A stretch of DNA of 63,764 nucleotides, the filler included, from Guillardia theta CCMP2712 (taxonomy: Eukaryota > Protista > Cryptophyta), in NCBI RefSeq assembly GCF_000315625.1. It is 6 parts of 6 records of this genome, joined end to end, with 100 filler letters (N's around TTAATTAATTAA, not from the genome) between each part and the next. Parts side by side here need not be neighbours in the genome. Positions count along the whole stretch, not along the records: positions 50,372 to 57,005 come from NW_005434367.1; 5 more parts are not named here. One strand, written 5' to 3'. The position numbers and the translations under genes were made by a program. Every line of letters starts with the position of its first letter. The stretch's first letter is position 1. The notes below the pieces were generated by a model. The model was not told the DNA's origin, did no database searches, and was given only the letters and a program-made list of their open reading frames with translations. Positions 3,936-57,105 of this stretch are shown here, in pieces.

Positions 3936-5860
3936 ATGAGCCTTGCCAGCGACATGTGGAGGGCAGGACGAGCCAGGAGGACGCAGGAGATGGTGCAGGA
4001 GGAGACGAGGAGGAGCGATCTTAGCTTCCTTCACTTGGACGCGCTCAAGTCAGCATTGTCGAGTCCTCGTGATAGACCCTGGAACAGCACACCCTGGCCC
4101 CCGCCACCGCAGCGCGAGCCCTCCTTCTATCCTAAGCGCCGGATGGAGGAAGTAGGAATGATGAGGAAACGAATGGAAGAGATGTACAGGGAGAGGTACG
4201 AACAAGCAACCAGCTCCGTTGACCGACTTGTTCGCCTTGTGAGGACACTATCGATCCCTCTGACTCTCATCGACTGACGGATCTCCAGGTCAACAACCAG
4301 CCTGACCCTCTAGCGTTCTATCCTCCCATTCACAAAGCGCCTCCCCTACCATCGGTCAACCCGTCTGACTCCTTGTACAAGGCAGCATATGAGAACATTC
4401 TGAGAGCAAACGCGATCTTCTCAGAGGAGGCAGAGCGGATGAAGGCAATCCTGAATGATCCTGCTAGGAGCAGCAGCTGGGCCAGCCAGCCGTCTCCCCG
4501 CCAGCCGGACACAAGGAGGGTAACGGGTGAGCAAGGGACGAGCAGGTACCGAGGTACCCAGGGGTCGGATGTGCCAGCGTCCGATGCTCCGCCATGGAGC
4601 AGCGAGAGGAGAGTTGACTTCTCGCCTCGTCTACAGTCGGGTACGTGTCATGCGCGTTCCTTGAGGAGCGCTGAACCTTGTGAGAAGGTGGTGAAGGGAC
4701 TGGGACGAAGCCTGCGGAAGGGGAAGCAGTGAACCCGAAGTCGGATGTCTCCGATGTGATAGCGGACAGGACAAGACAGAGGGTGCAGCAGGAGGTGAGG
4801 GAACGGATCAGGAAGGCAGCAGCAGCGAGGAAGGAGCCGTCGCCTCCTCGCCCTCGCAACTCTCCTCGCATTAGCCCACCTTTGCACCAGGACAGAAACA
4901 ATTTCGAGCTCAGCCACATCATGCGCTTGCAGTACCCCAGCCAACCTCTGCCAGGACTGCACCTGCACCAGCACCAGCACCAGCACCAGCACCAGCACCA
5001 GCACCAGCACCAGCAGGAACGGTCGGAGGTCTTCAAACTGTCTGAGGAGACGTGGGGAGGGAGGGCGGGGCAAGAGGAAAGATACCTAGGAAGGAGCTCT
5101 AACCTATTCCCCGGTGGCAACTCCCTCCCCTCCCTTGCAGAGGCAGCGGAGGAGCAGGTCCCCTGGAGCAGCATAGAATATCAGAGCCGCACTCTGAACC
5201 CTCCTCCTTCTCCTCCTCCTCCTCTTCCTCCTGCGCCTGCTCCTCCTCCTCCCTTTTCACCCTACACTGCTCAACAGCAACCTGTCATAGCCCTCCATTC
5301 GCAGGATCACATGGACCGAGCAGGGCGAGGAGAGGAGCCTCCCCGTCCTGCGCCAACCCAGGGCAGCGCTGAGAAGATCGTCGCCTTCCAACAGGAAGCC
5401 AACAGAGAAAGTCTGGCGGTACCGCAGTCCTCCTCGGAGGTGAACTCGTTGCTCGCTCCTCCTGCAAAGTGACGGACGAGACAGGCTCCCAAGTTCCGAA
5501 CGCTCATCACTTCCAAGATCCCTGAGATAGGATGGAGCGCGGACCAGAGCGAGCTCACAGACACGCCAGAGGACGAGGACGAGGACGAGGACGAGTTTGA
5601 CTTGGACGAGGACGAGGAACATGAAGCGAGGGACCTTGCGAGCATTCATGAGTTCCTCACTTTCAAGCACTACGTGAAGATTATCAGGCAGAAGGAGCTC
5701 GTCCCGCAGGTAGCTGTTTTGACAGAGAAATGTGTTGACGCGAGCTGTTTTGACAAGCGATGTGTTGACTAGCTGCTACTTGACTCGAGCATGCAGATGT
5801 TCTCGCTGCACGAGGCAGTTACAGCCTTCCATGAATTCTCACAGTTCCATGCGGTGCGTC
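3936..5860 (+). CDS. Multi-exon hypothetical protein (low complexity, Pro/Gln/His-rich)
   Basis: Chain of overlapping + strand ORFs (3936-4277, 4373-4732, 4729-5472) with plausible GT-AG introns; no recognisable domain. Confidence 0.45.
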
Positions 5861-6336
5861 TCGCAGTCTACACGCGGGAGGAAGAGGAGGAGGAGGGGGG
5901 GGGGGATGTAAGGGGATAGCGCGGGACAACACGGGCAGCTGGAGGAAAGGAGGGATGACGAGGGTTCAGAGAGCAGAGGACAAGAAGGACAAGACTGCAG
6001 CAGGAACAAGTCAAAGGAGGAAGAGGAGGGGATACAAGCAGGAGGAGGGAGAAGACGGGGAAGATGACCTTAACGTGCAGGAATCCGGTCGGGACGAGAA
6101 GACACTGAGCGTGACAGACTTCCAGAGTTTGCTGGAGCTGCTGCTGGAGTGATTGCTGGATAGCAGGAAGGCGCTGCTTTGGGGTGGGGTGGGGTGGGGT
6201 GGGGGGAGATGGATAGAGATATTTCAGAGCAGAAAACTTCCAGGTGTTCGATTCAGTATTCATGGTATAAATGTACAGCTGCTAAAGTACATGATGTAAA
6301 CAAATTAACAATGTCGTTGATCTCCCCGTCATGCCT

Positions 6337-13485: not shown

Positions 13486-16350
13486 AGTCTGTCATGTTGT
13501 CTGCAAGGTGGTCATCGTCTCTGTCCGTTCTCGTCCTCTCGTCTCGCTTCTTCCTCCTACCATCACCATCGCTCTCCCACTCGCTTCTACCTCACACTCC
13601 CAGGTTCCCGCCATCTCGCTACTCCTCTTTCCGTTCTGATGCGGGCCTGCTTTTAGCCATTTCCGTTCCGAAGTCGACGGTCAAGTTCCGACTGAGTTCC
13701 GGCGGCCGCCCGGCCCCGGGCCCCCAGCGGGCCGGCGGGGCCGCCCCGCCCGGGGCCCGGCGGGAACTCAGTTAGTTGTCACAACAGTAGTGTCAGAGCA
13801 GACAGGCTGATCGTGCATCGTACCATAGTACGGTCGGCCCGTCGTTTTCGGGGTGACGCAGTTCGACGGCCCGGGCCGGGACGGCGCGGGCCTCGGCGCC
13901 AGTCACTGAGTGACTCAGGGCTCCGGGGCCCCACTGAGCCCGGCCCGGCCGACAACCCCGGGCCCGGCAGTCGGACTCCGGGCCGCCTCAGCAGCCGGAG
14001 AGATTGGAACTTGAAACTCGTCAGGCGTAGTCCAAGTAGAAATCCACCCCCTCAATCCATATCCCTTGAACGGGTCATCTTCCATTGTACCAGCTACCCC
14101 ATAAATTGACTGCTATCGTACCGGTAGTGACCTCTACACCTTTCCCGGACCCCCTTCAACATACTCAATACCCATGTTTTCCAATGACCCCTACCCCCTG
14201 TAAAAATGATATACCCACCCACCATTCGGCCCCCAGTATCTTTCCTCCACCCTTCTTCAAAAAGTAAATCGGACCGCTTCAGTACCAACACCACTGAAGA
14301 CCAGGGGTGGTCATTTACCTACCCCATTCCATCGTCCAATTTACGATGGCAGGGTGGGTACGTACCTTTTTTGAAGCTTCAACGGACCCCCACCCCTCTT
14401 CATAGTTCACTATTTCATTACCAGTCGACCACCCCTTCATTCACTCTCCACCCACCCATACCTTTACCAAGACTTCTCGCTCTTTGTACCCCCCTCATTC
14501 CTCTTCTTCAAGTACCCCTCACCCTACCCTCGGGGTCTGCAGTGAAGCGTAGAGGTCTAAGGGGACCCTATTGGTCATACCTAGGTCATAGAAATTTGCC
14601 TATTTCCTAGAACCTTCTATGCTATGTTGAAGGGGGGTGCTACCAAGTACCCCATATTTTAGGAAGATAATCAAGGTGTTTCTAGGGGTAGGGGTGTTAA
14701 CCCCTTACCCCCATTTTCCGATCTGTTGCAAAGGGTAGAGGGATGCAGGGTGGAGTCTAAGCGGTGGGTACTTTGGCGGGGAAAAAATGGGGTGGAAAGG
14801 AAGTCTTGGGAGGGGGTAGTGTCCCTTATACCCTGTCAGAAGCGCGGTTATGGCAGGGAATGGGAGCGAAGGGGGAGAGATCAGGAAAGAGAAGAGTAGA
14901 GCAGGAGAAGAAACTTGTCAGAACGAACCTGAGATCAGTGATAGAGGAGGTGAGCAGTTAGAGGTGGGGTTGAAGCATGCAGGAGAGAAGAGGTGAGGTG
15001 ATCCAGAGCCTTTGTGGCGAGGAAGAATGAACGATGCTGCTGCGGTCAAGGGAGGAGAGGACGTGAGGGAGCAAAATATTACCATCGGAATGATATTGCA
15101 ACCATCTTTACAAAGAGGAGAACCGTCTGTCAATCGTGTGCATTGCAGGAGAGAAGCCCAGGTGACACAGGTTTCGTAAACATTCGTAACGTGCAAGGGT
15201 GTTGCCTGAATCACCTAGGGATCCTAAGGCCTTGTATTATAATGCGACATCTGAGGATGCAAACAGCAGGATGAAGTGTTTTCTGTTTCATTGTCAGCCA
15301 GATGAAGTCAGCGAGTGGTTAACTTGTGCTCTGTTGCAAGGAGGCAAAGTGGGTCCAAGCACATCAGTGGGTGCCTCGACGAGAGCAGGGGCAGGGGCAG
15401 GGGCAGGGGCAGGGGCAGGGGCAGGGGGAGGCATTTCAGTCTTGCCTGTCTTTTCCTCTTCATCTGGATTGGTTGTCTGACATGAGGATTTCAGTATCTC
15501 TCGACCAGTATGAGCTGTAGGATTCTTTGCGGAATCTACCTCAGGTTTCCTCCTCCTCCTCCTCCTTTTCCCTCCTCCTCCTTTTACCTCCTCCTCCTTT
15601 TACCTCCTCCTCCCTCCTCCTCCTCCTCCCTCCTCCTGCCCTACTTCTCCTCCTCCCTCCCCCCCCCTCCCCCTCCTCCTGCTTTCTTTGTCTCTCATCC
15701 TCTGATCGACTATCCAGCTCTGTGCTGTTCTCCGCCGGCTACGCAGCTCACATCGGACCACTCGGACGGATGGCAGCTGCTCCTCGTCACAACGTAATTC
15801 TCCCGCCATCATCAACTCCTCCTCTTCCTCTTCTCCTTCCCGTCTCCTCTTGCTCTTCCTCTTCCTCTTCCTCTTCCTCTTGCTCTTCCTCCTGCTCTTC
15901 TCCTTCCCGTCTCCTCTTGCTCTTCCTCCTGCTCTTCCTCTTACTCTCCTCCTTCCCGTCTCCTCTTGCTCTTCCTCTTGCTCTTCTCCTTCCCTTTTCC
16001 TATCCCTTCCCCTCGCGCCGTCATCCCTATTCCGACATGTCTTCATCCTTGTGCCATCCTCTCCCTCCACGTCCTCACGTCAGCTGCGCCAGCCCCTCTC
16101 ATCCGTCCTCCAGGCCAACGGTGGCGACCTGTCGCTCCGGCTTCGAGGAGGAGAAGCTGCATCCTCTGCAGGCAACCATCTCCTCCTGCTTTCTCCTCTC
16201 CTTCTCTTGCACTCCTCCTCCTCCTCATCCTCCTCCTCCTCCTCCTCCTTTCCTGCTCGCCTTCTCCTGACTAGCTAGCAGAAGGATCCTTGGCAGCGCA
16301 AAGCCAGACTGCTGGTCCGCTGTCCTCTGACGAAGCGTCCATTTCTTGAC

Positions 16351-50371: not shown

Positions 50372-51004
50372 TTTCTCCCAGGGGGGAGGAAACCCTCCCC
50401 TTAACCCCCCTGTTTCTCGACGGGATCCTGCCGGTCGGGCCGGTCAGTAGACCGACTGCAACCTTTCAGCCCCCGCCTCAGACCCCCATGGAGGCCCGCC
50501 AGGAGGCTAAGTGTCCGGAGATTGGCCGGGGGCCTGATCTCTCCGGGCGGCCGTGACCGGTCAGCGGACCGTGTCAGCAGGCCCGTGACATGTCAGCCGG
50601 CTGACAGGGGCCGTGACCCGGCTGACAGGCTCACCTGACCGGTCACGTGACACATCACGTGACCGAGACAAGACTTTTTTATATCGCAGATCCAAAAACC
50701 CATAGGACATTTCTCCCAGGGGGAAGAAAACCTCCCTTGACCCCCCTGTTTCTCGACGGATCCTGCCGGCCGGGCCCGTCAGTAGACCGACTGCAGCCTT
50801 CAGCCCCGCCTCAGACCCCCTGGAGGCCCGCCAGGAGGCTAAGTGTCCGGAGATTGGCCGGGGGCCTGATCTCTCCGGGCGGCCGTGACCGGTCAGCGGA
50901 CCGTGTCAGCAGGCCCGTGACATGTCAGCCGGCTGACAGGGGCCGTGACCCGGCTGACAGGCTCACCTGACCGGTCACGTGACACATCACGTGATCGAGA
51001 CAAG
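50372..51004 (+). repeat. 332-bp tandem repeat, left part (partial unit plus unit 50674-51004)
   Basis: Near-identical to the units at 56033-56905. Confidence 0.95.
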
Positions 51005-51405
51005 CATTCCATGGCATTTACTAATGCCCGTCCGTTGTTGTTTTCGAATGGGGTCTTTGGGCCCTTGATTTTTCATCCGCGTTGCCGTTGAAATTTTGTA
51101 CCGTAAGTTTTGAACTGCCTTGAAATCCTGATATGTTTTCATCATTCCTGCAAGCTGTTTTATTCTTATATGAGTTGTTTATCAATGAACTTTATCATTT
51201 TCATTTTTGAAAAGGTTGTTGTTCGGCTACACGCCTTTACACGCGGGCCGCTAGAGGTCGGATCTTCAATTCAAACATCATGCCCCCCCGGCCACTGAGC
51301 TGATCATATCCAGATTTCTCTTCCTCTGCCCGTCGCTATGCCATGCATCATGTGTAGGATTTTCCGCTCTTCCGTTCACTCGAGTTTCAAGTGACAACTA
51401 TAAAC

Positions 51406-54203
51406 ATGTCGGAAGTCTCCCTGGCTTATCAGCCGACCATAACATTTGGAGCTGCTTTTGGATCAGGGTTCAGTCAACGTCCCTTTGTCAGATGCTTGTT
51501 TGCAGATGCATCTATACATTTTTCATTACTACGTCAAACATGGTTTCAAGCTCCTCCTCTTGATTGCAATGATATGGAAGAGTTGATGAGATTCTTCTGG
51601 TTTCAAATCGAATCGCGTCCAATGACAATTCTTCAGAGAATTCTGCCAGCTAGAACCGCGAATTATGGACGATATTATATCAGACACCAGTCAAATAGAG
51701 GTTTGGAATTCCTTGCTGCATTCGAGGGATTCGTAAAAGAAGATGGCACCCCAGACGTTCTTATGTTCCTGACAAGGATCGGACAGGGATACATGTTCTC
51801 TTCTACCTCAATTTTTGGCAGCACATTTCGTCGGTACTTCAAGCTTCTAGAGGACTACAACACATTGCAGAATGAGAACGCACGTCTAAATCAAGAGATT
51901 GTTGCTTTGCGGGAGAAGTCAGAACAATTGAAACCTTTATTTGATGTTCAGAAACTCACATTTGCCAACTTATGGCGCACGATTTTTCCGAAGAAGGAAT
52001 ATCCACAAGGTGTTGACAGCATGTCAGAAAGTGATCATCTCGGATACCTGAGAACAGTTTTGAGTTGTCTACAGCCCGTCATTTGTATTTTGGAATCTTG
52101 CTTGCAAAACTTGAGTCCTGGTTATTCAATCAGCAAGATGTTTGGTTATCTGATTGCAATACCTCAGAGAAAAACCTCTGTGTTGAATTTGGAAAATTTT
52201 CTTTCCGGTTTTTCATCCTCGATCACAAAAACTCTCAGATGCCGTATCCTCTCAAACAATTCGATACGTATGGCTCTGCGTAGAATTTCTTCATGTTTGA
52301 TGCCGACTGCTGAACAAATTGCAAGGGAGTCCCTGGAGAGGGGAATTTCGCATAGCTCTATTTGTCATGTATACTCGATGTATCACTACACGGGTATGAT
52401 GCCTTGTCCCAAATTGGTCACAACTTCAAGAGCTCAGATCAAAAAGCATGTCCAAGAATTATTGGGGCTTGTGGAAACTGCAGATGGATACAGAATTCCT
52501 CTTGAAAGGAGACTCGAACTGCATTTGATGGAATACATGGAACAACAACATGTTCATCTGTTGGACATCAAAAAGTTGCTTACATTGCTTGCGTTCGACG
52601 GAACAAGACTGGGTTCATCTGCTCAATCTAACTCATCGCATTGTGAATTTACCCTAACCTGCGCAGCTGTCTTTTCAAGATTTGTGGAAACACTTGTTAG
52701 GCAGCAGGAAGATTTTCTTAATTCCCCACTGTCTTTAGCTACATTTCTTTTAATATGTATGGATGATACTATCGAAAATGTGAAGCGAAATTTTTGGGAA
52801 ATGTATTTGCAAGAGCTGATTGCGCTCATCAAAGACACTACCTTAGATAATGGGAAAATTTTAAAGGCTGGGCTGCATTTCTATCGCGATCCTGAAACCA
52901 ACCAACTTACCTGTCTTGGAGGTCGGGCACGGACAGCATCTTCTCTGGAAGATGTTCCAGAGGTGGTATTGCCCCTTGAAATTTACTTCAAGGGTGACAT
53001 GAAAGGGTTTTGGAATCTGGTTGCGATGAAAGGTATCCGTGGAACGCACTGCTGCTTGTTTTGCAACATCAGTACAAGTGCAAAGCATGAGATGTTTCAC
53101 ATAATCAATGTCGAGACAGAGCAATCTGTTTCTAATTTTTGTGCGGAAGTGTCGATACCTGTAGATTGCTTTTGGATTCTCAACGACGGTGCAGCTGAAG
53201 GCGGTTCAAACATTGTTCAATTATGTATGTTCAACCGCCAAACTCTCAGTCAGGCTGACAAGGCTGCTCTGCGAAGTTCAAGATCATCAAATATGTTGCA
53301 CGCAGGGCAAAGGGTAGTGGTTTTGAAGCAAGATGAATCTTTCACGCGACAACATGACATGCTCAACCAATGTGGCTTAACATGCAAAAGTATGATTCTT
53401 TGCATGCTTCATCTCAAGCTGAGGATTACTTCATGCTTTGTCAAGTGGTTTTACAAAACAGCCACCAAGATGAGATTGCTCCAAGCTGTCAATCGTGTAT
53501 TGGTGACATCTGGAATCAATTACAATCTGGAAGGATCATCTGATAGACTACCAAGCTTGAATGGTGAGCAGTGCGATGATATGGTGGAAGTTGCTCTACC
53601 AAGAATTGTTGATGTGTTAATCAACGATTCTGTACTGAACAATCAGTTCCAAGAGGTTTTCAAGATCTGGTCTCGAATCCTTTCTACAATCACAAAAACC
53701 CACAGAAATTATTTTCAACCCGGAGAGATAGAATCCCTACAAGGAAGGATCAATTCGTTTGTAATCAAGTACGTGTCTTTGACTGGCGACAAACAAATGT
53801 TTTCAGCAATTTACTTCCATATGTTGAGTTCGGGACATGTCTCAGACCTTTTCCGTCATCACATGGATGTGAATGAACTGCCCTTAGGACTTCTCAGTAT
53901 GAGTACCAACGAGTTAAGACATAAGGTAGAGTTTGCATTGAACTTCGAACCTCATTCTTGCGTACTTAATGTACTTATCAGTTGCGGGGAAGAGGAGCAT
54001 GGAGGCAAGCGGGTGCCCAAGCGAATAAGAACATGAAAAGGGATCTAGCGGCGGCAGGTTTGGATAAAGACAACGATGATCCTGAGGTTATCAGGCAGGC
54101 AGCGAAAAGACACAGAGGTTTGTACACGTTCATAAACATGGCGTGTAACCAGTTTGTCACGGGTAAAGCAGTTGAAAACATGAAGCAAAAATTGAAAGAA
54201 TAA
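51406..54203 (+). CDS. RAG1/Transib-like DDE transposase, about 913 aa; exons 51406-53925 and 53982-54203
   Basis: Ordered RAG1-core motifs: AFDG (D at 52597), NSPLSLATFLLICMDD (cf. NSELCCKPLCLMLADE), KGDMK (D at 52996), HCCLFC (ZnC2), CMLHLKL, SLNGEQC, YFHMLSSGH (ZnH2) and LGLLSMSTNELRHK (E at 53911). A 56-nt GT-AG intron continues in frame to LRGRGAWRQ. Confidence 0.88.
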
Positions 54204-54213
54204 AGCAAAAAGA

Positions 54214-55350
54214 CTAAGGTTGTGGTGGACAAGGTTGTTGACATTTGTATCTCTCCCATAGGACTCTTGATGGCGTCCCTCCCACGCTTCCAATGCCTCC
54301 AAGTGACCATACAAAGTTACCATTGCGAGTGGATACAACCAATGGCGAGGCTACAAACATTTGTGTCAGATTGTCTTGTAATTGAGGAGAGTTTTTGCAT
54401 GGGAATTCCAAGAAAGTTTGAAATGACTTATCTTGCAAAATCACTTCTGGAATGGTCCACGAATATTTCCATTCTCTCCTTTCAACCTTCAAATGGTTCC
54501 ATAATTGTGCTGGAATGAGTCTCAACAGTGCACAAAATGAAATCTCATGGCTTTTGAATTCATACTCACGAGTTCCCTTCTTCTCAAAGGTCTCACTTCT
54601 TGACTTCAACCACTGATTCAGCTTCTTTTTGACTTCAGTCATATCTCGACAAATCCGATTGTACTCCGACGCAGAACAGAAAGTTGTTTGCACCATCTTT
54701 TCAACGAGGGATGCCGGGTTTGCCATGGAGAAGTGAGAGATTTCACAGTATTTGTTCTTTTTGACATTGTCTTCATGAAAAAATATGTACCCATGCACTC
54801 TGAAATTATCCTCGAGATCATCGTTGGCATGATCCAACATGCAAGGAAAGCTGAAGAAACAAATGTTTTGTATAGCTTTTACATCGACCGTATCCTTGTA
54901 ACTTGATTGAAAGCAATCACGGTTTCCAATTTTGGTCAAAATTCTTTTCAGGGCCACACAGGGTACTCGATTAGTTGTAATGTTCTCGTCTACATGTTCC
55001 AAGAGGACTCGATCATACATGATGTACACTTCGACAACCTGTGCATCTGAATCCAGCGATTTGATCATCCCCAGTCGATTCACTTCAACGCCCCTGTGAT
55101 CTTCACACTGATATTGAACCCCTATGCCAGGCTCAAGTCTGATATTCAAATCACTCCTTGGCTTGTTCCAGTACATCCTGGGCAAGTCTCGATCATCAAC
55201 TGACATCTGCAGGATCATTGGAAGCCTCAAATCTTCAGGTATCTTTGACTCATCACAAGTCTCTTCCTGCTCCAAGGATGTGTCGAAATCTTCCTGCCTT
55301 CGCCTTTTCTGAATTCCATTTGATGCTGATACACGACGAGGAAGATTCAT
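54214..55350 (-). CDS. Transposon accessory protein, 378 aa, with putative BAH-like domain
   Basis: Uninterrupted ORF inside the TIRs, stop 10 bp from the transposase stop. It has an NLS-like KRRR, and EPGIGVQY..RLGMIKSL..VEVYIMYDR..RDCFQSSYKDTVDVKAIQNICFF resembles the BAH consensus. Confidence 0.7.
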   Translation of the reverse strand: MNLPRRVSASNGIQKRRRQEDFDTSLEQEETCDESKIPEDLRLPMILQMSVDDRDLPRMYWNKPRSDLNIRLEPGIGVQYQCEDHRGVEVNRLGMIKSLDSDAQVVEVYIMYDRVLLEHVDENITTNRVPCVALKRILTKIGNRDCFQSSYKDTVDVKAIQNICFFSFPCMLDHANDDLEDNFRVHGYIFFHEDNVKKNKYCEISHFSMANPASLVEKMVQTTFCSASEYNRICRDMTEVKKKLNQWLKSRSETFEKKGTREYEFKSHEISFCALLRLIPAQLWNHLKVERREWKYSWTIPEVILQDKSFQTFLEFPCKNSPQLQDNLTQMFVASPLVVSTRNGNFVWSLGGIGSVGGTPSRVLWERYKCQQPCPPQP

Positions 55351-56032
55351 TTGTTCACAGTGTCTTAACTGGGGCCGCTGTGATGAATAGGGGAGCAGGC
55401 GGTGAGGAAAGGGAGCAGGGAGGGGCAGGGAAGCATGGAGAGAGGGAGGGGAACCCCCCACACCTGGCTAGTCCGATGTACGACCGGTAATTTATCATAT
55501 AATTTAGGCATAAAGGTGGGGTAGGAGTATATACCCGTAGGCGAGTGACCCCTACGATTTCAAGAAAAATATTTGCTGTTTGATTGGAAACATGGGAACC
55601 TGTGTTCCAGAAGTACCCTACAACACATAGGGTAGGTAATGACAAAATAACCGGTACAGGAAAAAAACGATTGCCGTTGCTAGCTGACGTACGACTCCTT
55701 GATTTGAAAACAAAAATACTTATTGGCTGGATTTACTACACTCGTCAATTGCTGACACTAATAAGATTTCATGGGCGTGTATCGAAATATACGAATAACC
55801 CTACCCCCTCAATATCAGACAAACATACCGGTACACAGGGTAGAGAACAGCCAAGAGGCGTGTAAGCCGGAACTCAAATGCTTAAAACAAATATAAAAGA
55901 GTACTGAGTGGTACAAATGGATCTGGTACAAAATTGACTAAAGACTGTATGCTTATGATCAAATTAACAGGTACAAGTGTTTGTTAAAAGGATATAAATT
56001 TATAATTGGGCATTAGTAAATGCCATGGAATG

Positions 56033-56905
56033 CTTTTTTATATCGCAGATCCAAAAACCCATAGGACATTTCTCCCAGGGGGAAGAAAACCTCCCTTGAC
56101 CCCCCTGTTTCTCGACGGATCCTGCCGGCCGGGCCCGTCAGTAGACCGACTGCAGCCTTCAGCCCCGCCTCAGACCCCCTGGAGGCCCGCCAGGAGGCTA
56201 AGTGTCCGGAGATTGGCCGGGGGCCTGATCTCTCCGGGCGGCCGTGACCGGTCAGCGGACCGTGTCAGCAGGCCCGTGACATGTCAGCCGGCTGACAGGG
56301 GCCGTGACCCGGCTGACAGGCTCACCTGACCGGTCACGTGACACATCACGTGACCGAGACAAGACTTTTTTATATCGCAGATCCAAAAACCCATAGGACA
56401 TTTCTCCCAGGGGGAAGAAAACCTCCCTTGACCCCCCTGTTTCTCGACGGATCCTGCCGGCCGGGCCGGTCAGTAGACCGACTGCAGCCTTCAGCCCCGC
56501 CTCAGACCCCCTGGAGGCCCGCCAGGAGGCTAAGTGTCCGGAGATTGGCCGGGGGCCTGATCTCTCCGGGCGGCCGTGACCGGTCAGCGGACCGTGTCAG
56601 CAGGCCCGTGACATGTCAGCCGGCTGACAGGGGCCGTGACCCGGCTGACAGGCTCACCTGACCGGTCACGTGACACATCACGTGACCGAGACAAGACTTT
56701 TTTATATCGCAGATCCAAAAACCCATAGGACATTTCTCCCAGGGGGAAGAAAACCTCCCTTGACCCCCCTGTTTCTCGACGGATCCTGCCGGCCGGGCCG
56801 GTCAGTAGACCGACTGCAGCCTTCAGCCCCGCCTCAGACCCCCTGGAGGCCCGCCAGGAGGTTAAGTGTCCGGAGATTGGCCGGGGGCCTGATCTCTCCG
56901 GGCGG
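56033..56905 (+). repeat. 332-bp tandem repeat, right part (units start 56033, 56365, 56697; last truncated)
   Basis: Exact 332-bp period with only a few substitutions. Confidence 0.95.
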
Positions 56906-57105
56906 AAGCACCCGATGATTTGCATATTTTGCACCACCTTTGAAGCTTTGCACCAATTTTTGGGCTTCCATGAGGTTTTGGCTTCTTGCAAGTACTGTGA
57001 AAGTANNNNNNNNNNNNNNNNNNNNNNNNNNNNNNNNNNNNNNNNNNNNTTAATTAATTAANNNNNNNNNNNNNNNNNNNNNNNNNNNNNNNNNNNNNNN
57101 NNNNN

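Follow-up and report, generated by a model that had tools for sequence, protein, structure and literature searches.

A putative RAG1/Transib-fold DNA transposon inserted without target duplication in a satellite array of the cryptophyte Guillardia theta

Introduction

How does a transposon come to lie at the exact centre of a short palindrome, with one target base missing and none duplicated? The question is raised by a stretch of the Guillardia theta CCMP2712 genome (63,764 nucleotides including filler; hereafter the window), in which a 332-bp tandem repeat of 63–65% GC is split by an insert of 42% GC, here called element A, that begins CATTCC and ends GGAATG (5028 bp, 51005–56032). The piece examined spans window positions 50372–57005, and all junctions analysed come from this single 6.6-kb piece, from seven loci in the 2012 assembly of G. 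theta and from a small number of short metagenomic contigs (cited below by locus numbers beginning with L). In what we consider the best explanation, which we hold to be about evenly balanced between right and wrong, element A is an autonomous DNA transposon that has been active recently and belongs to a deep-branching lineage whose transposase joins element to target bluntly or with a stagger of −1. In that explanation the lineage is previously undescribed, and its transposase, predicted to have the RAG1/Transib fold, always travels with a convergent second gene, open reading frame 2 (ORF2).

Junctions of element A

The satellite units around element A preserve the uninterrupted target. Three empty junctions, located in the sequence by script, read GAGACAAG (starting at 50665, 56356 and 56688), each followed by ACTTTTTTATATC, giving the whole junction GAGACAAGACTTTTTTATATC and placing the palindromic heptamer AAGACTT at 50670–50676, 56361–56367 and 56693–56699. 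At the occupied site, GAGACAAG (50997–51004) runs directly into the element, and the satellite resumes with CTTTTTTATATC from 56033, so that the right side reads CTTTTTT. The central A of AAG-A-CTT is gone and there is no direct repeat; none of the alternative boundaries for the element brings back a duplication. The terminal inverted repeats (TIRs; CATTCCATGGCATTTACTAATGCCC) are complementary at 25 of 25 positions, the AAG and CTT flanks lengthen this inverted repeat to 28 bp, and the arms are 89% complementary across 37 nt. The flanks themselves are complementary at 8 of 12 positions (binomial p ~0.003 at an expectation of 25%, our own estimate from a post hoc test). A first-pass annotation of the window had given the same three heptamer positions and had described a replaced central A, an absent target-site duplication and a 28-bp extended inverted repeat, all of which are borne out by the junction sequences; its span for the insertion, 50996–56045, is wider than the element itself (51005–56032) by 9 and 13 bases of flank.

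The same satellite also occurs in the G. theta scaffolds JH993271.1, JH993240.1 and JH993353.1. Across four arrays, all 20 empty units that were read keep the central A (three in the window, eight in L002, six in L008 and three in L009), and the variant AAGCTT, which by the first-pass annotation's own criterion would have explained the missing base had it been common, is found in none of them.

The insertion-carrying unit has a private C-to-T change at 50995, 10 bp upstream of the junction (GACC to GATC; GTGACCGAG to GTGATCGAG), which extends the imperfect palindrome around the insertion site. Satellite units are in general rich in short perfect palindromes (TGACCGGTCA, TCAGCCGGCTGA and two copies of CACGTG), which lie in the same part of every unit (for example, window 50552–50662) and may resemble binding sites of dimeric factors; the strongest of them hold neither the site of element A nor that of the B elements described below. 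The arrays end abruptly in mid-unit, at unit position ~209 in the window (56906–57005) and 217 in L002 (13188), where sequence of 42% GC follows, and these ends may mark the edge of another insertion. The possibility that the satellite is a known RNA gene (spliced-leader RNA, 5S or small nuclear RNA) was rejected, since scanning the piece against Rfam at E values up to 1 returned noise only.

Junctions of related elements

Related elements were read in three further subfamilies, denoted B, C and D, and in two additional A-type copies (A2 in L002 and an A-like copy in the metagenomic contig L005; Table 1). Both junctions could be read for five insertions (A, B in L002, B in L008, C and D); none of these has a duplication of at least 3 bp, and no 5-bp duplication was found in any copy read. 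The lack of a duplication noted in the first pass for element A thus extends to its relatives, with net changes of −1 in A, −1 or 0 in B and exactly 0 in D. For example, L010 holds an empty paralogue of the D site, in which CCTCCAT is followed directly by TGTGATCC at 5742/5743, together with a filled site having the same two flanks; the insertion of D, whose transposase is ~24% identical to that of A, is exact, with 0 bp gained or lost.

The B elements occupy a single satellite position, TTGGCCG^GGGGCCTGA, in three of three copies. In L008 the element faces the other way with respect to the satellite, and its two flanks together restore the consensus with neither gain nor loss, while in L002 and L009 the flanks are one G short of the five G's present in 19 of 19 empty units. 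Since inversion of a whole segment keeps the orientation of an element relative to its flanks, the simplest reading of the L008 copy is a separate insertion into the same spot, for which we estimate a chance of ~3/332 under uniform insertion. The reuse of one position in both orientations argues for target recognition by the transposition machinery.

Flanks are not shared in the same way among the A-type copies. A2, which lies in the same genome, is 85–89% identical to element A over its alignable part and the L005 copy is 90% identical, and their flanks (left flank CAGACCCCCT and right flank TAGGCACC, respectively) are unlike AAG and CTT; the specificity for an AAG/CTT site that the first-pass annotation had raised as one option is therefore not supported within the A subfamily, while common flanks are found in the B subfamily. 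A palindromic target was likewise rejected as a rule for the family, flank complementarity being only 5/12 in B and 3/12 in both C and D, compared with 8/12 in A. The palindrome is a property of the site of element A, not of the family. Satellite, or a flanking stretch of it, is present at five of the nine readable copies (the three B copies, A and A2), and the satellite seems to be a preferred landing place of these elements; C sits in non-satellite DNA. An 11-nt repeat on both sides of C (GTTGGCCGGGC) is non-significant (E 0.22). A metagenome scan for further TIR ends yielded a single contig, which breaks off exactly at the terminus and therefore has no flank, and the metagenomic contig L007 lies wholly inside an element and has no ends.

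In the left flank of A2 (L002 13487–13525), only the last 14 bases (GCCTCAGACCCCCT) are common to the satellite, and upstream of them lie unrelated sequence and an assembly gap.

The transposase and its partner gene

Searches with the sequence of the larger gene, ORF1, were uninformative: no Pfam match was obtained among 15 family members, no match to PDB sequences was found with either the single sequence or a 15-sequence profile at E values up to 10, and an exact-protein look-up returned no record for ORF1 or its Hanusia homologue. A weak language-model lead had a score of 0.90. An AlphaFold2 model of residues 330–876, built from a 19-sequence alignment, reached a predicted local distance difference test (pLDDT) of 86.5 and a predicted template-modelling score of 0.85. 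The top 48 Foldseek matches to this model were RAG1, HzTransib and amphioxus RAG1L only (E down to 1.4e-9, ~530 aligned columns). Structural alignment with VIA-align gave Z 18.4 against RAG1 (383–395 residues, root-mean-square deviation ~4 Å, RAG1 residues ~483–1000), Z 18.1 over 371 residues against HzTransib (PDB 6pqx) and Z 17.4 against BbRAG1L (PDB 6b40), against Z 11.9 for the next family, the P element transposase, and Z 7.2 for Hermes. Candidate catalytic residues (D398, D531 and E836) and candidate zinc ligands (C550, C553, H805 and H811, in a C-x2-C...H-x5-H arrangement) are kept in the family alignment wherever the region is present. The C-x2-C motif lies at +19 and +22 from the second D, a spacing that would match that of RAG1 D708, C727 and C730. 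The predicted structure and motifs support the reading of ORF1 as a transposase with the RAG1/Transib catalytic-core fold, which in that superfamily comprises pre-RNase H, RNase H, ZnC2, ZnH2 and C-terminal domains, so that the RAG/Transib attribution made in the first pass is supported at the level of fold and finds no counterpart at the level of sequence.

Homologues of ORF2 are convergent with the transposase gene in A, B, C, D and the metagenomic contig L007, that is, in every subfamily read, and are kept even between transposases of only 24% identity (hhalign probabilities of 99.5% and 98.3%). Since ORF2 is conserved alongside such divergent transposases, it is, judging by this conservation, a functional partner of the transposase. 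Neither single-sequence nor profile searches of Pfam and PDB gave a match for ORF2, and no kelch, RAG2 or PHD signal was detected in them; its single-sequence AlphaFold2 model had a pLDDT of 30, and a weak language-model resemblance to BAH domains had a score of 0.85.

A transcript-type contig, L001, is 99% identical to element A, and a C-type element is represented in UniRef by a transcriptome-derived protein; L001 and such transcriptome-derived proteins indicate expression. L001 (~1110–1117) is without 298 bp of window 54166–54463, comprising the ORF2 tail and the intergenic spacer. An intron in ORF2 was considered as the explanation and rejected, given non-canonical boundaries with TA microhomology and the conservation of the longer ORF2 tail in B and C; the gap probably reflects a deletion variant copy.

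Mechanism of insertion and alternative explanations

Under the preferred reading, excision would proceed as in RAG, Transib and hAT, by a nick followed by formation of a hairpin on the flank, leaving the element ends blunt. Each of the two 3'-OH ends would then join a target phosphate, the two phosphates either facing each other across the duplex or standing one nucleotide apart in the 3' direction. Since a stagger of 0 or −1 leaves no gap to fill, no duplication would arise, and with a stagger of −1 the central base pair would be left as two 1-nt flaps and then lost. At AAG-A-CTT each strand would be attacked immediately 3' of the central A/T, a symmetric arrangement such as a two-fold complex should produce; no other symmetric pair of cuts removes exactly the central pair. 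The broader form of this proposal, that a RAG1-fold lineage in Guillardia, Hanusia and environmental relatives may carry out blunt or one-base reverse-staggered strand transfer, with a RAG2-unrelated partner steering it into a palindrome-rich satellite, is more tentative, and we place it somewhat short of even.

Several points weigh against joining by the transposase in this manner. In the solved strand-transfer complexes of RAG and Transib the stagger is 5 bp (5'), and the kinship of ORF1 with RAG1 and Transib rests on predicted structure and motifs, sequence profiles giving no connection between them. The integration chemistry is read from junctions, and the AAG/CTT site is occupied by one copy only. 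A transposase normally gives a fixed stagger, whereas the change at known empty sites varies (−1, −1 or 0, and 0). In addition, the G missing beside the B elements of L002 and L009 falls within a G-run to which the element contributes its own final base, where later slippage is possible, and the GT that flanks C at each end may be a 2-bp duplication or a coincidence. A look-alike, element E (non-autonomous, 2104 bp, L010 16504–18607), has a perfect 25-bp TIR (CATTCTGGGGTCAAACCGCGGTAGT; CATTCTGGGG...) that starts with CATTCT, its first five bases being those of the A, B and C termini, and shows a clean 3-bp duplication, GCT, against two empty paralogues (14095–14278 and 5743–5926). No link of E to a transposase was established; if it is moved by these enzymes, it would mean a variable stagger.

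Such variability would be better accommodated if the element, excised in the same way, had been captured in blunt form by host end-joining at a double-strand break, either spontaneous in the palindrome-rich satellite or made by the transposase at a cryptic site. We consider this the leading alternative, though unlikely overall. The outcomes would then run from −1 (A), −1 or 0 (B) and 0 (D) to possibly +2 (C) and +3 (E); the termini are complete in every copy, as for protected blunt signal ends; and DNA is rearranged at two places, with a CTGA junction in the satellite 8 bp from the right end of B in L002 and a scrambled C copy in L011. Excised RAG products are also reported to reinsert without duplications in lymphocytes (PMC1820826). 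However, the use by B of one position in both orientations (~3/332) would need a recurrent break at that exact spot, and the exact symmetric geometry at the AAG-A-CTT dyad would be unexpected from random breaks. A different way to dispense with target loss is an exact 0-bp insertion into a rare AAGCTT unit, or loss of the A at a later time. The two cleanest cases in the family (D and B in L008) are exactly 0 bp, AAGCTT would be a perfect even palindrome, and the insertion unit does carry another private change nearby (GACC to GATC). This account is nevertheless improbable, as none of the 20 empty units reads AAGCTT, and a later deletion exactly at the junction is unlikely, there being no homopolymer to slip.

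An ordinary Transib-type 5-bp duplication might have been erased by recombination between copies in neighbouring units, much as the first-pass annotation had envisaged a crossover between two insertions, and ectopic exchange is possible in a tandem satellite that holds several related elements, B in several arrays. Yet the flanks of element A are contiguous but for one base, which would require two insertions offset by exactly 6 bp; a 5-bp duplication occurs at none of the five two-junction insertions; and D is exact beside its empty paralogue in non-satellite DNA, which renders a crossover unnecessary. We hold this explanation to be very improbable. The earlier suggestion that the empty units are themselves excision footprints (AAG+A+CTT) amplified through the array is a formal possibility to which we give hardly any credence: the A is found in 20 of 20 units across four scaffolds, and by analogy with RAG and hAT chemistry a hairpin at ...AAG would be expected to yield C, not A, as the palindromic nucleotide. 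Conservative site-specific recombination was also considered and rejected on inspection, since no shared core sequence fits both junctions.

Features of the locus and of related loci

The features of the piece and the related copies are listed in Table 1.

Table 1 Features of the element A locus (window positions) and junctions of related elements (locus positions)
Feature	Position	Strand	Notes
Left flank, satellite	50372..51004	.	~1.9 units, 65% GC; from sequence; Rfam no match
Empty target AAG-A-CTT, unit 1	50670..50676	.	
Left half of occupied target	50997..51004	.	GAGACAAG
Element A	51005..56032	+	5028 bp, 42% GC; terminus CATTCCATGG; flanks AAG / CTT; net −1 (A lost)
Left TIR	51005..51029	+	CATTCCATGGCATTTACTAATGCCC; 25/25 complementary to right TIR
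ORF1	51406..54036	+	876 aa; predicted RAG1/Transib-fold transposase
ORF2	54214..55350	-	378 aa (55350-54217); ATG at 55350; convergent with ORF1; putative conserved partner; Pfam/PDB no match
Right TIR	56008..56032	-	
Right flank, satellite	56033..56905	.	2.6 units; begins CTTTTTTATATC
Empty target AAG-A-CTT, unit 3	56361..56367	.	
Empty target AAG-A-CTT, unit 4	56693..56699	.	
B in L002	75-10186		10.1 kb; terminus CATTCCATTGGG; flanks GGCCG / GGGCC; net −1 (one G fewer)
B in L008	631-10796		10.1 kb; terminus CATTCCATTGGG; opposite orientation; flanks sum to consensus; net 0
B in L009	to 10152		Left end missing; terminus CATTCCATTGGG; right flank GGGCC, as in L002
C in L003	8655-13757		5103 bp; terminus CATTCCGTTCC; flanks GGGCGT / GTCAAT; at most 2-bp repeat
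D in L010	9483-14094		4612 bp; terminus CATAT(T/C)GGTC; flanks CCTCCAT / TGTGATCC; net exactly 0
A2 in L002	left end 13526		Terminus CATTCCATGG; left flank CAGACCCCCT, ending CCCCCT
A-like in L005 (metagenome)			Terminus CATTCCATGG; right flank TAGGCACC

Between ORF2 and their right end, the B elements have a third gene (L002 7199–8620 on the plus strand, L008 8282–9220 and L009 7642–8580), which encodes a predicted protein kinase (Pfam Pkinase, E 7.6e-35) with N-terminal RRARETEEERSARLASQRRRQSE repeats. In L003, the long inverted repeats that surround C contain kinase genes as well. Both C and D are situated within long (0.75–1.3 kb) inverted duplications of host DNA that are 97–100% identical (L003 6906–8239 and 16946–18279; L010 8562–9309 and 18714–19466), and near D a TTTAGGG-type telomere-like repeat is present at L010 7223–7243, ~25–45 kb from the end of a 593-kb scaffold.

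Local rearrangements were observed at two of these loci. In L002 (10187–10490), the satellite flips orientation for 226 bp, starting eight bases past the right end of B, with CTGA microhomology at the flip junction beside a TGACCGGTCA palindrome and then a partial unit with an internal deletion, an arrangement that resembles break repair or aberrant transposition. In L011 (9643–11367), a scrambled C-type copy consists of an internal segment (element positions ~971–2464) fused to a reversed copy of the element's initial 240 bp, and therefore ends in an inverted left TIR (...GGAACGGAATG/CAACC). An 88-bp piece of element E, 92% identical, lies just past the satellite array in L002 (13299–13386).

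Comparison with known systems

By its predicted fold, element A groups with Transib and RAG, but it has no sequence-profile match to them, no CAC heptamer and no 5-bp duplication. The heptamer CAC(A/T)GTG is absent from the termini of A (CATTCCATGG), B (CATTCCATTGGG), C (CATTCCGTTCC) and D (CATAT(T/C)GGTC). Element A resembles Transib (for example, that of Helicoverpa zea, PDB 6pqx) in its predicted core fold, its candidate D-D-E and C-x2-C / H..H positions, TIRs starting with CA and what is probably a cut-and-paste mode of movement. However, Transib elements end in CAC(A/T)GTG, leave a 5-bp duplication and have only one gene, whereas element A has CATTCC termini, no duplication and an apparently obligatory second gene. 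The layout of two convergent genes between TIRs, one of them a predicted RAG1-fold transposase, is shared with RAG-like transposons such as amphioxus ProtoRAG and AanRAGL of Aureococcus. These have a RAG2-like partner, a six-bladed kelch propeller with or without a PHD finger, asymmetric TIRs of heptamer/nonamer type and a 5-bp duplication, and have already been published from a unicellular alga, AanRAGL showing the 5-bp duplication and CAC-type TIRs (PMC9435367). ORF2 gives no RAG2, kelch or PHD signal in Pfam and PDB profile searches, and element A lacks a duplication. No paper naming both Guillardia and Transib was found within a limited coverage of the literature.

Vertebrate RAG1/RAG2 offers a further comparison as a transposase, RAG1 being the best structural match to the ORF1 model. 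Hairpin tips and the dyads of inverted repeats are favoured targets of RAG in vitro (PMC1618415), a preference that resembles the dyad-centred insertion of element A at AAG-A-CTT. Vertebrate RAG is, however, domesticated and transposes with 5-bp duplications, and a palindromic target is not general in the family of element A. Precise, duplication-free insertion by eukaryotic DDE transposons is otherwise represented by Spy elements (PIF/Harbinger), which insert at symmetric AAA/TTT sites; their PIF/Harbinger-type transposase is unrelated to ORF1, which has a predicted RAG1 fold and no Pfam match. Dada (in small-RNA genes) and Pokey (in ribosomal DNA) are transposons aimed at multicopy repeats, with duplications of 6–7 bp or TTAA. 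The B subfamily is like them in hitting one position of a tandem unit repeatedly, but Dada and Pokey belong to other superfamilies and target genes, while elements A and B lie in a satellite.

Significance

Two hallmarks, a 5-bp duplication and a CAC heptamer, are taken to join Transib, RAG-like transposons and V(D)J recombination. A cryptophyte transposase with a predicted RAG1 fold, without either hallmark and with a seemingly different and obligatory partner, would widen the known range of the RAG family, and element A offers a natural comparison for the evolution of the partner protein and of target-DNA geometry. As an example of footprint-free insertion by a putative eukaryotic DDE transposon, it is also a tractable system, its intact ORFs, perfect TIRs and transcript evidence suggesting that it could be tested directly. 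If true, blunt or reverse-staggered joining would represent a target geometry unlike that of every characterised RAG or Transib enzyme.

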